DNA from: Haliotis cracherodii
Lineage: Eukaryota
Length of the DNA stretch: 64,000 nt
Assembly (NCBI RefSeq): GCF_022045235.1
Contig: NW_027266297.1
Coordinates: 61,318,001-61,382,000, forward strand
Reading direction: 5' to 3'
Under the pieces are notes generated by a model, which was not told the origin of the DNA, searched no databases, and worked only from the letters and a program-made list of their open reading frames with translations. The position numbers were made by a program, and so were the translations under genes. Positions 1-56,748 of the stretch are shown here, piece after piece. Position 1 is the stretch's first letter, and every line of letters starts with the position of its first letter.

Positions 1-958
1 TCCAAATAACCACTGGAATCCTGGCGATGATTGTCATTTTGGTGATGGGGATATTGATCCTGCAACGATTATCAGAATGTGTGAAAAGGTGAGAAGATTA
101 CTTCACCAGCAATGACAAATAGGGGCTACAGAAAACTACTGTGGCATGTCACTGGTACCAAATCGCAAACGTATTTCATCATTGTATGACTTGGCGATGT
201 GATAAGTGTCTTTAAAAAGCGTATCCTCATTCTTATTAACACATCTGACAACATTTCAAGACATTAATTCTGATAGTTATGCTAATTATGTTTATTAGAT
301 AAGGCATACATCTGGTGGGCCAAAATTGCTCCTATAATAACTAATCCTTTTTTCAGCATCTACTTACACAGTGATATTACTGTTTTGCAGGCGTGCCTCC
401 TCAACGTCGCCTCCTCCGGAAGGTCGGACACAGCCGGGGCCTGCAGGGGATTCGGGGGATCACCATGACAGTAATGGAGGGACACAGCCAGGGCGTACAA
501 GCAACTCGGGGGATCACCACGACAGTGATGATTGGACAACCACATACTGGGTAATCCTTGACAGAGATGTTAATTCCACATCATCCTTCTCACAGACTCA
601 CGACGAAGTAATACAACTACGAAGAAAGAACTATGAAATTAGTAAACCATTATCAGTTGATGAACAACCGAACGTTCTTGGACGCGCAAGGACAACCAAG
701 AGACACCTTTCCGAATCACCAGTTGACACAACATCATCGTTGTCCTTGTTGGGTGCAACATCACATGTCAAAGGTGACGGTTTAAGATCAAAGTCAGCCC
801 ATGATAAACGAGGCATCACTATATCGCCAGAAGTCAAGGAATTGATAAAGAAAACTGATTCGATCATATTCATTGAGCAAAACTGCGACTTGTCAAGAGT
901 GAGTGCAAGTTATCTTAGTCCAACAGCTGACACATGTCATCATCACACAAGTGAGTGA
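1..958 (+). CDS. Receptor paralog R0, 3' partial: TM exon <1-88 and cytoplasmic exon 391-958
   Basis: The frame from nt 3 reads QITTGILAMIVILVMGILILQRLSECVK, then AG|GTGAG (phase 2). The acceptor TTTTGCAG at 390 joins in frame to ORF 371-958. It is a close twin of R1 exons 9517-9616 and 9893-10430. AATAAA at 1016. Confidence 0.88.
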
Positions 959-1219
959 GGGAACAACAATTAAAGCCATAGTCAGCAATATGTCATCTAT
1001 ATCACGATGTCTGTAAATAAACTAGCATTGACGACGTATACCAGTGACTGAAGGCACGAGCAACAATCGCCGCCATCGGTAACGATGCCACGCAATCACT
1101 CAGATTTAGAAGAGCCTGACCACCTGATCCCTATTTTCCGCCTCTTATGACAAGTATGGGGTGCTTAGGATCTATTCCTTCACGGAATCCAAACATGATT
1201 CCAGGATCTCTAAGTATAA

Positions 1220-1380
1220 GGGGCGGTCGGGTAGCCTAGTGGTTAAAGCGTTCGCTCGTCACGCCGAAGACCCGGGTTTGATTCCCGACATGGGTACAAT
1301 GTTTGAAGCCCATTTCTGGTGTCCCCCGCCGTGATATTGCTGGAATATTGCTAAAAGCGGCGTAAAACCATTCTCACTCT
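1220..1380 (+). mobile_element. tRNA-derived SINE, family A (short, CTCA-repeat tail)
   Basis: A box (TAGCCTAGTGG) and B-box-like GGTTTGATTCC; target-site duplication CTCTAAGTATAA at 1208-1219 and 1381-1392. Confidence 0.9.
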
Positions 1381-1957
1381 CTCTAAGTATAAATGTAAAT
1401 ACCATTTTGTTATATCAATCATACGAGTCTTTCCCAGTCAAGATCTTCATACAAAAAAATCGATATGAAATTAATTGAAATAGTCTGAAATAGTCACCAT
1501 AACGCTATGATTCACGACCTTGTATATATAAGTCACTGTGACCTCCATCGTAATATACTTGTGTTTTATCATAGTTATGTTTTTGGGTTGCTGAATGGTT
1601 TATTTTACAAAAATGCCTAAAATGAATATGGGATTAGCAACTGGACTAATTAAATTGAATGCATTGTCTTAAGCCATGCACTTTTGTATAACCTGTTTGT
1701 GCGTTTAATATTCTCGCCAATGTACATATGTCTTATTAAAACCCTTTGTATTACTTCGTGTCTGAACCTGTGTTCAATGTATCTCCGATCCCGGCGCGGG
1801 TGACATTGTCTCAAAACGTCCATGGGCATATGTGCATCACGTCTAAACACACCTGCTTGCACATGCAGGACATGTCGTGGTTTTTGATCTGAACAATCTT
1901 TGGATTTGAGTAGGGGGGTACTGGAATGCAACTTGAGTATTACTCAAACTGGAGCAT

Positions 1958-53286: not shown

Positions 53287-56055
53287 TATTCGCATTGAAG
53301 TACCGTAAGATGATAAACAAGCCCTGCAATTGTTATAGTGCGAACATAAAAAATGTTTGCATGTTTACCCCACGGTTAACATACATGTGGTCACGTCACA
53401 TTTGGTTTGCGATTACAAACAGGTGCAACATAGGCCAGCTCACACATGCTCACAAATACTTCCTTGTATCAGAACAAGGATGTTTCCATAACATGCGTAA
53501 ACGAGTGAAGGATGTGTCACAAAAATATAGAACAGAGAATGATGAACTACATAGCCAATATTATGTTTCACTATTTGAAATCTTTTCTTGTATTGCCTTT
53601 ACACAAACACTTTATAATTGACATCCAGCATAACGATTGTGTTACTTGTTGGTGTCTAATCAGTCAAAATGACATATCCATTAACAACATAACTTCCACC
53701 ACTTGATTCACATAAATATAGCCTTGCGCAGATACCCTGTAATAATATCAGTTCTAAACACAACACTATAATATCGTCACATTGTTTACAGTGAGGAAAT
53801 TGCAATACATGTCACAAAAAACACAAACACACACCTGTACATGCAGCTCTATGTGTTGCTAGGTTTTACAATACGCCCTTAATGTTGTGGTTTGTCGGTT
53901 TTACATAAATTTTATTTACATAATGCTTTAAACAAGGTTATACGATAAAAATCAGTTTTCAAAATTACCTTCAGGTAGGACTTGAGTACTTTCAAATAAA
54001 TATGTTCACTCTTAGTTTTGCAACAAATTCACATTCTAACTTAGAACCAATAACGCTGATGCACCTATTAGAATGCAGGATTCTACACTGTTATGGTGGC
54101 ATCCAGATAGACTCCAAAAATTATATTATGTTTGACAACATCATTGTCATACCGGACCCGTGACGACCCGTTCACCGGTCAGACGCTCAATCCATTAGAC
54201 CACGAAGGCGCTCGTATGGCTATAATGTTTATTATTTGTGTTGGTAAAAGTACATTCGCAGGTGTGTAATAACTTCGTTAAATAATTATATGTCCTGACC
54301 TCAGGTTGTTGTATAAGTTAAAAATAAAAATAATTCAGAAGAAGATAACAAATATATTTCCCGCTCGAAGTAACGCGGAAAATATATTTATCTGCTCAAA
54401 CAAAATCTAACGTGTTCATTAAATAAACAAATTCATGTCACCGTGGGTCCCGAGACCCGTGTTTCGACTGTCATTCCGCGTGTATCTCTCTATATATATA
54501 AGTACAAGTATCAAGTTTTTTACATGATTGTGAATGCATTTACAGAAGTACGTACCACAGTCAGAACAATATAACAATGAATATTATACAATTGTATTTG
54601 TATGGACATAAATAAATTGATTTTACCTGATTGAAACTTTTGCTTATCAATCTATAAAGAAGAGTGGCATGTCGCTGGGAGCGTCTGTCAGCAATCCTTA
54701 TTTGGTCATCCTTATGGGGTCAATGACGGACACGGTAACAAAGGACGGAGAGGTCTTGTTGTGACTTAAAATTATAAAATACTACTTTTAGTGTGTCACG
54801 TCAGTACGTCAACTGTGCTGGACGATAAGGTTTTACTTTAATGATTTTATTATAACTCTATAGTTCTTTATGCTTATAGTTATGTAAACCTGATTGCACA
54901 TTTTGTAATGGCAATAGAGTGACAATGCTACTACAATGAGCGGGAACTGAATATATTATAGATAACAGAAATATCTAAACACTTGTTGTGGTGTGTAGTA
55001 TACACTACACTAGCGTTTCTAGCAAAGGTGATCGCAGCTGTAATGATTTTCAGCATCAGATGATATCTTGTGAGAATATATATACGCTGAAATGCAAATC
55101 ACTGATGTACAAGTCGTAACAATGTCAACTACTAAATATGACAGCAAACCTGTGATTACGATACACTAGTCTAAATGCAGGTTAGTATCTATATCCATAC
55201 ATGTTTAATTTCGTTACAAAACACTTGTTCTATTCAGTTGATGTCCTGGTTTCACATGTGACAATGACACACAGGACATACTTCCTTGTAGTTGAATCAG
55301 CCAAGCCTCCACTTGTATAGAAAGCCGGCGCAACGATGTTCCAAATGCATACCCGATTCACTCAACCATTGAGGTTCAGCCTCACATGTGTCTGTGTGAT
55401 CTAACTGGTTTTCTCACAATATTATACTTTCGCTTCCGCCTTCATCCTTTCACCCATTATTTAGAAATGACTCAGTTATTCGTCATACCCAACAACAGAT
55501 ATACACATGCATATGGTCTTGAACTCGGAAATATCTTTGCACTGATTATACACATCATGTTCAGGTAAGATCTTTGTCGTGATATTATCTCCAATGTTCT
55601 AAGCATGTACCACAAACGTCTTTAATTTTTCCTGAAGTAAACATTCCACATGTTATTCTCGATGACGTAGACACGTGGTTGCTGGTTATGACGATGCCAC
55701 AACTGATGCTGCTGAATACTTGTATATGCTGAATGAAACTTACATGTAATGAAACGCGTGACTTCATTTTGTGATTCACATAGGTCGCAAAAAACTTGTT
55801 GTTGGTATCAGTGAAAAACTGTATCGGGTCAGTCTCGCTGACTTGGTTGATGTATGTCATGGTATCCCGATGGCGTAGATCATGTTCATGATGTCTATCA
55901 CTGGATTGTCGGGTCCAGACTCGATTAGTGCCGGACTATTGGTGCGGCGTTAAACAATAAACAAACAAAGATAATCTACATGTAGGTGATGCAGATGCAT
56001 AGTTGTCTTTGAAGGAAGCTTAACGTGCATGTATCTCATCTCGTCTCTGATACTA

Positions 56056-56406
56056 GTCTAGTGGTAGAGCGTCCGCCCGGAGAGCGGAAGGTCCGGGGTT
56101 CGATCCCCGGCCCGTCATACCAAAAGACGTTAAAATATGGTACTTGTTGTTACCCTGTCTGGCGCTCGGCATTAAAGGGCTAAAGCAAGGACTGGTCGGC
56201 TCGGAGTCAGTATACTGTGTCTGTGTGGGGTATTCATGTTAAACTGCAGCATGGTATCTCAGTGAGCTAGCACTATAAATCGGCATCAGTCCGAATAGTA
56301 CAAGCAGCCACACACACACATAAGTACATGCACGTCGCTATATAAGTGCAATAATTTTGGACGCGACGTTAAACCCCATTTCACCTCACCTCACCTCACC
56401 TCACCT
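56056..56406 (+). mobile_element. SINE family B
   Basis: GTCTAGTGGTAGAGCG...GGTTCGATCCC head; (CACCT)n tail. Confidence 0.88.
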
Positions 56407-56681
56407 CTGAAAGATGCAGATGCAGATGTGGCACAGTTACAAAATTAAATATACATCTTAGAACATATGAATGATGGTGTTGACTTCTATATGTAAGAGA
56501 CAGGTGTAGTGATGTTTTAATCTGTGTCTGACCATAGGGGCCTTTCAACATGATGTAACACACAGAAACAAGCACACATCAGTAAACCTTCAGAAATCTT
56601 GGATGCATTTATATCAAGTTTGTCATCAGTGCTTCAATTTAGCAAAAGTCATTTTATTGTTACAGCTAGGCAGCGTTAAGT

Positions 56682-56748
56682 ATGAGGCAGGCGTTGTTCC
56701 TCGTGCTGAGTGTGACCTGCTGCGTGGACCGTGCATGTGCAGGTCGAG
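56682..56748 (+). CDS. Signal-peptide exon of a probable further gene (R6?); downstream exons not found in the window
   Basis: Acceptor TTTTATTGTTACAG at 56665; ATG 56682 gives MRQALFLVLSVTCCVDRACAGR; phase-1 donor G|GTACGT. Same layout as the R1-R5 first coding exons. Confidence 0.5.

Follow-up and report, generated by a model that had tools for sequence, protein, structure and literature searches.

A same-strand tandem array of candidate multi-EGF membrane receptors in the black abalone genome shares its N-terminal head with tyrosine phosphatases

We analyzed a 64,000-nucleotide stretch of the genome of the black abalone, Haliotis cracherodii (assembly GCF_022045235.1, contig NW_027266297.1, positions 61,318,001 to 61,382,000 of the forward strand; hereafter the window), and found that it forms the distal end of a tandem array of at least 19–20 tail-bearing genes, all on one strand, that extends over ~0.3 Mb of one chromosome. 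Judging from their translated exons, these genes encode type I membrane proteins built from a signal peptide, a Cys-rich N-terminal module (the head), a run of epidermal growth factor (EGF)-like units, a single transmembrane (TM) helix and a cytoplasmic tail. The same head is joined to tyrosine-phosphatase domains in sister genes nearby. We hold with high confidence the part of our account that comprises the array, its anatomy, its restriction to Haliotis, the fold match of the head and the modes of evolution. The complete explanation, in which inferred signaling is added to the anatomy and the evolution, is one that we favor by a modest degree.

Organization of the receptor array

The window contains six family members, all on the plus strand, as detected with an open reading frame (ORF) listing, self-tblastn and hidden Markov model (HMM) scans: R1 to R5 are complete, and R0 is represented by its 3′ half because it is truncated by the window start, its ectodomain exon lying ~2.4 kb upstream. 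The tblastn and HMM self-searches matched five N-terminal modules, with EGF exons beginning at 7525, 18617, 24649, 30874 and 47722, and six tail exons on the plus strand (391–958, 9893–10430, 20544–21093, 26852–27449, 33338–33971 and 50399–50954). A seventh gene was sought at 34–47 kb and 51–64 kb and none was found; HMM scans detected no family feature past 50,954 in the window, and the interval of 51–56.7 kb holds nothing related.

Genome-wide, the tail profile matches 19 places, every one on the plus strand of contig C34, which carries the window, between 61.11 and 61.37 Mb. A divergent twentieth tail-bearing gene, P0013, maps to 61.415 Mb. The 77-residue N-terminal head yields at least 35 genome matches, all on C34, at 61.10–61.52 Mb and, on the minus strand, at 66.07–66.38 Mb. 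A partial and more distant copy of the head module also occurs at 53322886–53323242 of C34, 8 Mb upstream of the window.

The genes follow a common exon plan of signal, ectodomain, TM and tail exons, and the intron phases are the same in all of them (phase 1 at the signal–ectodomain and ectodomain–TM junctions, phase 2 at the TM–tail junction). R4 and R5 each have an extra ectodomain intron, which sets off a small juxtamembrane Cys exon in R4 and splits the ectodomain in two in R5. Every located exon is open and has GT-AG sites and conserved phases. The four coding exons of R3 form an open frame of 584 residues, which is also the length of the Haliotis rufescens ortholog P0001; the two are 91.8% identical. 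Logan contigs of the R3 ortholog from three runs (X1, X2 and X6) join five exons and skip the introns, and therefore come from spliced RNA. The R3-matching contigs stem from three organisms and are ~96% identical to R3, which points to congeners as their source.

Ectodomain architecture and predicted fold of the head

The ectodomain coding lengths of R1 to R5 are 328, 267, 321, 178 and 389 residues, with 60, 48, 60, 32 and 72 Cys, respectively. A Cys-rich head of 77–150 residues, within which the shared N-terminal module has a mean column identity of 85%, precedes a variable run of SREC-type EGF units, for a count of 5–12 six-Cys modules. The family members combine a signal exon, EGF-like repeats only and one TM segment with no other Pfam domain: Pfam searches of all large exons, of the tails and of three full-length orthologs (P0001, P0022 and P0008) returned only a sub-threshold EGF_TEN match and an EGF_laminin match on R1. 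The R1 exon contains 6.5 tandem copies of a 93-nucleotide (31-residue) EGF unit (7881–8492, 92% identity), and R5 exceeds its H. rufescens ortholog by one unit. The EGF run grows and shrinks through duplication of 93-nucleotide units inside one large exon.

We modeled the R3 head with AlphaFold2 from 25 paralogous heads, obtaining a mean predicted local distance difference test (pLDDT) score of 72.5, good from residue ~55 onward and poor before it. A Foldseek search of the PDB with this model gave a sole match at E<1e-3, entry 8hna, the N-terminal fragment (residues 20–221) of human SCARF1 (E 1.5e-4, probability 1.00, 23% identity, TM-score 0.32). The predicted head fold is thus best matched by this fragment. 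A phmmer search of the PDB with the R3 ectodomain returned a single match, to a RING/SWIM entry, and no SCARF chain; we rejected it as spurious.

Cytoplasmic tails and their tyrosine boxes

The tails span 170–210 residues and are divergent, yet all six retain two boxes with one invariant tyrosine each. Box 1, [DY]W..[KRT]YW[EV]I, sits 17–53 residues into the tail exon and fits the pattern YxxI. Box 2, LI[KR]KT.S..xIE.NCD.S....YL[ST]P, ends in YxxP; this 30-residue motif is the best-conserved part of the tail. A cytoplasmic NPxY motif is found in none of the six tails. Box 2 has a ratio of nonsynonymous to synonymous rates (omega) of 0.07–0.27 and is thus kept by purifying selection at the protein level. 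The AlphaFold2 model of the tail is disordered (pLDDT 50); its only helix, a weak one, covers Box 2. A look-up of the tail in the ESM Atlas gave no usable match. The tail is best read, from this model, as a flexible segment bearing short linear motifs. Phosphorylated motifs of the YxxI and YxxP kind serve as docking sites for SH2 domains, and YxxO, where O is a bulky hydrophobic residue, also acts as a sorting signal for AP-2.

An earlier note on this DNA had described six to seven same-strand paralogs with an identical exon plan over positions 1–56748, with ectodomains of ~177 (R4) to ~389 residues (R5), a shared N-terminal module and divergent tails with two Tyr boxes and no NPxY. This anatomy is borne out by the plus-strand exons in phases 1/1/2 with one additional intron each in R4 and R5, the measured lengths of 178 and 389 residues, the identity of the N-terminal module and the motifs of all six tails. 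The gene count stands at six, five complete genes and the half of R0, but the seventh gene falls away and the family ends at 50,954.

The head is joined to other cytoplasmic modules

In P0011 (61.4735–61.4805 Mb, ~92 kb past the window), the same head and two EGF units are fused to a TM segment and a protein tyrosine phosphatase (PTP) domain. A second gene with this fusion is located at 61.508–61.517 Mb and at least six more lie in the 66 Mb cluster, so that phosphatase genes bearing the head occupy 61.47, 61.51 and 66.05–66.38 Mb; four Haliotis species have PTP-domain proteins with this head. P0008, encoded 24 kb before the window, bears the head on a third type of tail. The synonymous divergence (dS) of the R1 head is 0.09–0.11 from the heads of the phosphatase genes and 0.04 from heads at a distance of 200 kb, and the tails of the head-sharing receptors are unalignable or saturated. 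The presence of one head on tyrosine phosphatases suggests that the tyrosine-tail receptors and their phosphatase sisters act on the same cue.

The WPD loop of the two nearest phosphatase sisters reads WPAHGVP and WPAYGVP (C34 61474877–61475074 and 61509901–61510062), with HCSAGVGRTG kept. These variants replace the catalytic-acid Asp with Ala; copies at 61.43 Mb and in the 66 Mb cluster retain WPDHGVP. By their sequence, the two WPA-variant phosphatases may be weak or substrate-trapping.

Evolution of the array and taxonomic range

In a maximum-likelihood tree of the tails, each window lineage joins orthologs from other species on starred branches: R2 groups with H. rubra, R4 with H. asinina, R5 with H. 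rufescens and H. asinina, and R3 with H. rufescens, H. rubra and H. asinina, while R0 pairs with H. rufescens and then with R1, H. asinina falling outside that group. Tail dS between window lineages is saturated, and that between R0 and R1 is 0.23. We read these data as five old window lineages, retained 1:1 across the genus, together with one younger duplication that gave rise to R0 and R1. Near-identical copies in the tail tree are confined to the upstream part of the array. At 61.20–61.27 Mb of C34, identical or nearly identical tail exons are paired ~47–48 kb apart (loci L008/L010, L012/L013 and L016/L018); these pairs are either a recent segmental tandem duplication or a stretch duplicated in the assembly.

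The N-terminal module has a different history. For the same gene pairs, its dS is 0.09 (R1–R4), 0.26 (R1–R2) and 0.22 (R2–R4), rising to 0.5–0.9 for R3 and R5, whereas the 62 codons that follow it range from 0.86 to saturation, and nucleotide identity climbs sharply at the module borders. Low head dS beside saturated tails means that the head has been exchanged among paralogs, and it is kept alike by non-allelic recombination, phosphatase genes 90–130 kb and 5 Mb away included. The exchange may have proceeded by gene conversion or by unequal crossing-over.

A parsimony count over 17 ‘core’ heads gave 101 nonsynonymous and 39 synonymous changes (omega 0.72), with 0 changes at Cys codons and ~16 surface codons that toggle repeatedly. 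This pattern suggests weak constraint or the shuffling of a small set of variants, the count being no test of positive selection. The R3 ectodomain compared with congeners has an omega of ~0.2 (from differences in aligned contigs, which are near-complete for run X1 only), and the values among paralogs are 0.17–0.5.

When the tail profile was searched against 1.84 billion representatives, nine clusters matched at E≤1e-10, all from Haliotis, and a word search with the head returned 19 proteins, all from Haliotis and most with a PTP domain. Strong protein matches to the R3 ectodomain are confined to H. rufescens, H. asinina, H. rubra and H. cracherodii; bivalve matches are weak and generic to EGF. 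As far as these sequence searches reach, the head and the tail are found only in Haliotis. RefSeq names the members MEGF10, MEGF11, MEGF6, ‘cell death abnormality protein 1-like’, SCARF1/2-like or uncharacterized, and a literature search with the RefSeq locus names and for abalone MEGF and scavenger receptors found no paper on the family. Labels of the MEGF10/CED-1/SCARF-like kind in Haliotis annotations do not appear to mark orthologs of those genes.

The earlier note had called the family lineage-specific, distinct from MEGF10, Draper and CED-1 and hidden under generic labels; the profile searches, the names above and the lack of an EMI match and of cytoplasmic NPxY in genes whose ectodomain occupies one or two large exons agree with it. 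Its proposal of birth-and-death evolution fits the R0/R1 duplication and the near-identical upstream copies, but not the five old lineages, with their saturated tail dS and 1:1 orthologs. The description of the receptors as ‘diversifying’ finds no support, as it stands, in the omega values of R3 and of the paralogs or in the homogenized head; omega is raised, at ~0.7, only in the recently related core heads.

Gene models and other features of the window

The models of R0, R1, R2, R4 and R5 were obtained by ortholog-guided mapping and a search for GT-AG sites, and that of R3 from contig-supported exons and the nearest GT-AG sites. Search queries were single exons or public ortholog identifiers, and the R3 frame assembled from its exons was inspected only for its length and for stops. 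All exons given below are on the plus strand.

The R0 TM exon (1–88, cut by the window start) is 100% identical to residues 96–124 of XP_071118708.1 (P0027, H. cracherodii) and is followed by a GT donor after 88; its tail exon (391–958, with an AG acceptor at 391, Box 1 TYWVI, Box 2 ..YLSP and the stop) is 100% identical to residues 124–312 of the same protein. R1 comprises an ectodomain exon with the head and the EGF repeats (7525–8502; ORF listing and tblastn/HMM), a TM exon (9517–9616; tblastn against the R0 model, GT-AG sites, phases 1 and 2) and a tail exon (9893–10430; Box 1 KYWEI, Box 2 ..YLSP; motif and profile matches). Directly upstream of the R1 ectodomain exon, at 7376–7462, lies a degenerate second copy of its first ~23 codons (…CSTCDSYNVICVDGVCLPRCV) in another frame, a local duplication of ~150 bp over the R1 intron–exon border. 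R2 has an ectodomain exon (18617–19402; tblastn/HMM self-search and splice sites), a TM exon (20198–20312; 81% identical to H. rubra P0021, GT-AG sites) and a tail exon (20544–21093; self-search and ortholog mapping). For R1 and R2 no signal exon could be placed, a heuristic search returning ambiguous candidates only.

R3 begins with a 5′ untranslated exon (22760–22954, start undefined; spliced contigs X2 and X6, donor AAG|gt), followed by a signal-peptide exon (23892–23974, ATG at 23896; 96% identical to residues 1–27 of H. rufescens P0001 and an 83-nucleotide piece of the spliced contigs), an ectodomain exon (24649–25614; spliced contigs X1, X2 and X6, 93% identical to P0001), a TM exon (26094–26205; spliced contigs and P0001 mapping) and a tail exon (26852–27449; spliced contigs), with a 3′ untranslated region extending to at least 27536. 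No H. cracherodii protein matching R3 was among those returned by the protein search with the R3 ectodomain.

The signal-peptide exon of R4 (29985–30009, donor CAG|gtatgt) matches the start of XP_071118511.1 (P0026). It precedes the shortest ectodomain exon of the array (30874–31300), which encodes the head and about two EGF units, a small Cys-rich juxtamembrane exon (31743–31846; 56% identical to residues 144–197 of H. asinina P0022), a TM exon (32170–32284; ortholog mapping and GT-AG sites) and a tail exon (33338–33971; self-search and ortholog mapping). The RefSeq models of R0 and R4 in H. cracherodii are incomplete: that of R0 (XP_071118708.1) is partial and that of R4 (XP_071118511.1) is truncated and TM-less. 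The latter (window 30874–33482) joins the ectodomain exon straight to the tail, leaving out the juxtamembrane and TM exons, and stops short; it may represent either an isoform without a TM segment or an error of modeling.

R5 consists of a signal-peptide exon (47129–47174; 93% identical to residues 1–15 of H. rufescens P0006), a first ectodomain exon (47722–48381) that holds the additional 31-residue EGF unit, a second ectodomain exon (48872–49378; 95% identical to P0006 residues 204–373), a TM exon (49967–50072; 97% identical to P0006) and a tail exon (50399–50954; 91% identical to P0006), the last family feature of the window.

An assembly gap without strand at 1997–2186 lies in intergenic DNA between R0 and R1, in no gene found, 1.0 kb beyond the R0 stop (958) and 5.3 kb ahead of the R1 EGF exon (7525). 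An (AATGAT)n-like repeat borders the gap, which has neither an exon nor an HMM match close by. An apparent ORF spanning the gap was discarded as a product of N being read as X. Sequence continuity over the gap bears only on the R0–R1 spacing and, in principle, on the unlocated first exon of R1.

The remainder of the window holds interspersed repeats and a decayed Tc1/mariner-like transposon on the minus strand (57500–58530), recognized by an HTH_38/CENP-B_N match and transposase-like ORF fragments in several frames. One set of short interspersed repeats is found at 10487–10843, 13136–13367, 45222–45492, 45816–46155 and 56056–56398, and a second at 15373–15643, 26463–26738, 28180–28432, 30069–30333 and 53030–53266. 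Both families are ~230–340 bp long and 83–95% identical, lie in either orientation in introns and spacers of the array and attract enormous contig depth in every run aligned. The 14-kb spacer between R4 and R5 contains open frames at 41411–41827 (plus strand) and 44714–45181 (minus strand), neither with a Pfam match; one encodes 138 residues with a C-terminal hydrophobic span and the other 155 residues.

Proposed function and alternative explanations

We propose that the window receptors act at the cell surface as binding receptors of the kind represented by class F scavenger receptors. Their variable EGF stalk would set ligand specificity or the reach of the receptor, and the common head would act as a shared binding or dimerization module, by analogy with SCARF1, the N-terminal fragment of which forms a homodimer and the ligand site of which lies in the middle EGF units (PMC11563577). 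Output would pass through Box 1 and Box 2, serving as phosphotyrosine docking sites or sorting signals, and the phosphatase-tailed sisters with the same head would oppose or tune the output of the tyrosine tails. Taken as a separate claim, phosphotyrosine signaling through the tail boxes tuned by phosphatase sisters is tentative, and we place its chances somewhat short of even.

Several observations weigh against this explanation. The likeness to SCARF1 is structural and weak, given the TM-score of 0.32 and the low confidence of the first 50 residues of the model, and the head sequence profile reaches SCARF1 chains at a marginal E of 0.022, second in rank. A prediction of a two-copy head complex gave no answer (score 0.00), which speaks neither for nor against binding. 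The low head dS could stem in part from recent exon exchange by unequal crossing-over, not gene conversion. The evidence of splicing is limited to R3 orthologs in related species, not the black abalone itself, and the tyrosine boxes are called signaling sites by matching of four-residue patterns.

The receptors could instead be constitutive endocytic scavenger receptors for polyanionic or particulate ligands, with Box 1 (YWEI) acting as a YxxO signal for AP-2 and neither kinase nor phosphatase signaling involved. The resemblance of the head fold to a scavenger receptor and the placement of a YxxO match 17–53 residues into the tail exon agree with such a role, but it leaves unexplained both the rank of Box 2 as the most conserved part of the tail and the occurrence of the same head on tyrosine phosphatases. 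We consider it unlikely.

The earlier note had viewed the genes as diversifying birth-and-death receptors for immune, self/non-self or gamete recognition. A large, lineage-restricted tandem family is what would be expected in that case, as are EGF numbers that differ among paralogs and among species, the core heads with an omega of ~0.7, ~16 recurrently changing surface codons and unchanged Cys, and the recent near-identical copies upstream; a Biomphalaria sudanica cluster of MEGF and MEGF receptor-phosphatase genes is moreover tied to schistosome resistance (PMC12297450). The window genes, however, are of old origin, each with a 1:1 ortholog across the genus, omega is ~0.2 for the R3 ectodomain and 0.17–0.5 among paralogs, and the outermost module is the best-conserved part. 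We regard this view as rather improbable.

A more speculative idea, to which we give little credence, is that the locus constitutes an abalone-specific paired receptor system on an EGF scaffold, in which one recombining head serves three outputs: a tail with tyrosine motifs, an active phosphatase and those phosphatases in which Ala replaces the WPD-loop Asp. If true, one ligand or one head-to-head contact would be read as opposing signals, and the system would be an invertebrate counterpart of the vertebrate activating/inhibitory pairs.

Homophilic and heterophilic ectodomain contacts are reported for SREC-I and SREC-II, and the abalone receptors might likewise mediate cell–cell adhesion or tissue patterning through such contacts, with no role in defense. 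A conserved head common to many paralogs would fit mutual recognition, and the N-terminal fragments of SCARF1 dimerize (PMC11563577). Against this, the head–head complex prediction returned no answer, and a single-genus range and ~35 copies are unusual for core developmental adhesion molecules; we see only a slim chance for adhesion as the function. Finally, that the genes are functionless decaying duplicates or annotation noise, as the partial or truncated RefSeq models of R0 and R4 and the absence of an H. cracherodii R3 protein among those returned might hint, is extremely improbable and already contradicted by the open exons with GT-AG sites and conserved phases, the splicing of the R3 ortholog in three runs, the purifying selection on Box 2 and the retention of orthologs across the genus.

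Comparison with known systems

Like MEGF10, Draper and CED-1, the abalone proteins are type I receptors that combine many EGF units with a tail bearing tyrosine motifs, and RefSeq gives some of them MEGF10/11/6 or ‘cell death abnormality protein 1-like’ names. They differ in having one or two large ectodomain exons rather than many small ones, and tails without NPxY, with one YxxI and one YxxP in place of NPxY and a YxxL or immunoreceptor tyrosine-based activation motif (ITAM). Pfam detected no EMI domain in the window exons or in the full-length orthologs P0001, P0022 and P0008; a genome-wide EMI scan matched nothing, controls included, and is thus uninformative. The family fails the defining features of the MEGF10/Draper/CED-1 group.

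The likeness to SCARF1 (SREC-I) and SCARF2 (SREC-II) is closer. These, too, are type I membrane proteins with an ectodomain made up entirely of atypical six-Cys EGF-like units, arranged as a curved rod; 8hna is the best match of the abalone head model, and several members are labeled ‘SCARF1/2-like’ in RefSeq. However, orthology is not detectable by sequence (profile E 0.022), the abalone tail is unrelated and Haliotis-only rather than a long Ser/Pro- or Arg/Lys-rich SREC-type domain, and the abalone ectodomain is encoded on 1–2 exons in ~35 clustered copies with a recombining head. The family resembles class F scavenger receptors but is apparently no set of SCARF1/2 orthologs.

Vertebrate paired receptors such as KIR, SIRP and PILR are likewise clustered, with ectodomains kept alike by recombination and differing cytoplasmic parts, as is the abalone head, which occurs on tyrosine-motif, phosphatase and third tail types, with a dS of 0.09–0.11 between the R1 head and those of the phosphatase sisters. 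The abalone proteins use an EGF fold rather than Ig or lectin domains, their phosphatase forms part of the receptor chain instead of being recruited by an immunoreceptor tyrosine-based inhibitory motif (ITIM), and opposing signaling in the abalone is putative.

To our knowledge, molluscs lack antibodies. How they recognize their targets is poorly understood, and snail clusters of multi-EGF and EGF-phosphatase genes have just been tied to parasite resistance. The abalone cluster offers a clean, well-delimited case, with a genus-restricted head and tail and a head shared by tyrosine-motif and phosphatase receptors. Its evolutionary modes are plain: recombination homogenizes the head, the stalk varies through duplication of its units, and a 30-residue motif of the tail is retained under selection. 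The cluster also supplies motifs and gene pairs for tests of signaling in a species that is endangered and hit by disease.

The nearest described system is SudRes1 of Biomphalaria sudanica, in which MEGF membrane genes and MEGF receptor phosphatases are linked to schistosome resistance, EGF units are gained and lost between haplotypes and the phosphatases carry a galactose-binding-like domain and tandem PTP domains (Nat Commun 2025, PMC12297450). Both loci are chromosomal clusters of multi-EGF membrane genes and receptor phosphatases with the same kind of ectodomain. They differ in that our Pfam scans found no galactose-binding-like domain in the abalone and in that the abalone head and tail are apparently Haliotis-only; the link to resistance belongs to the snail.

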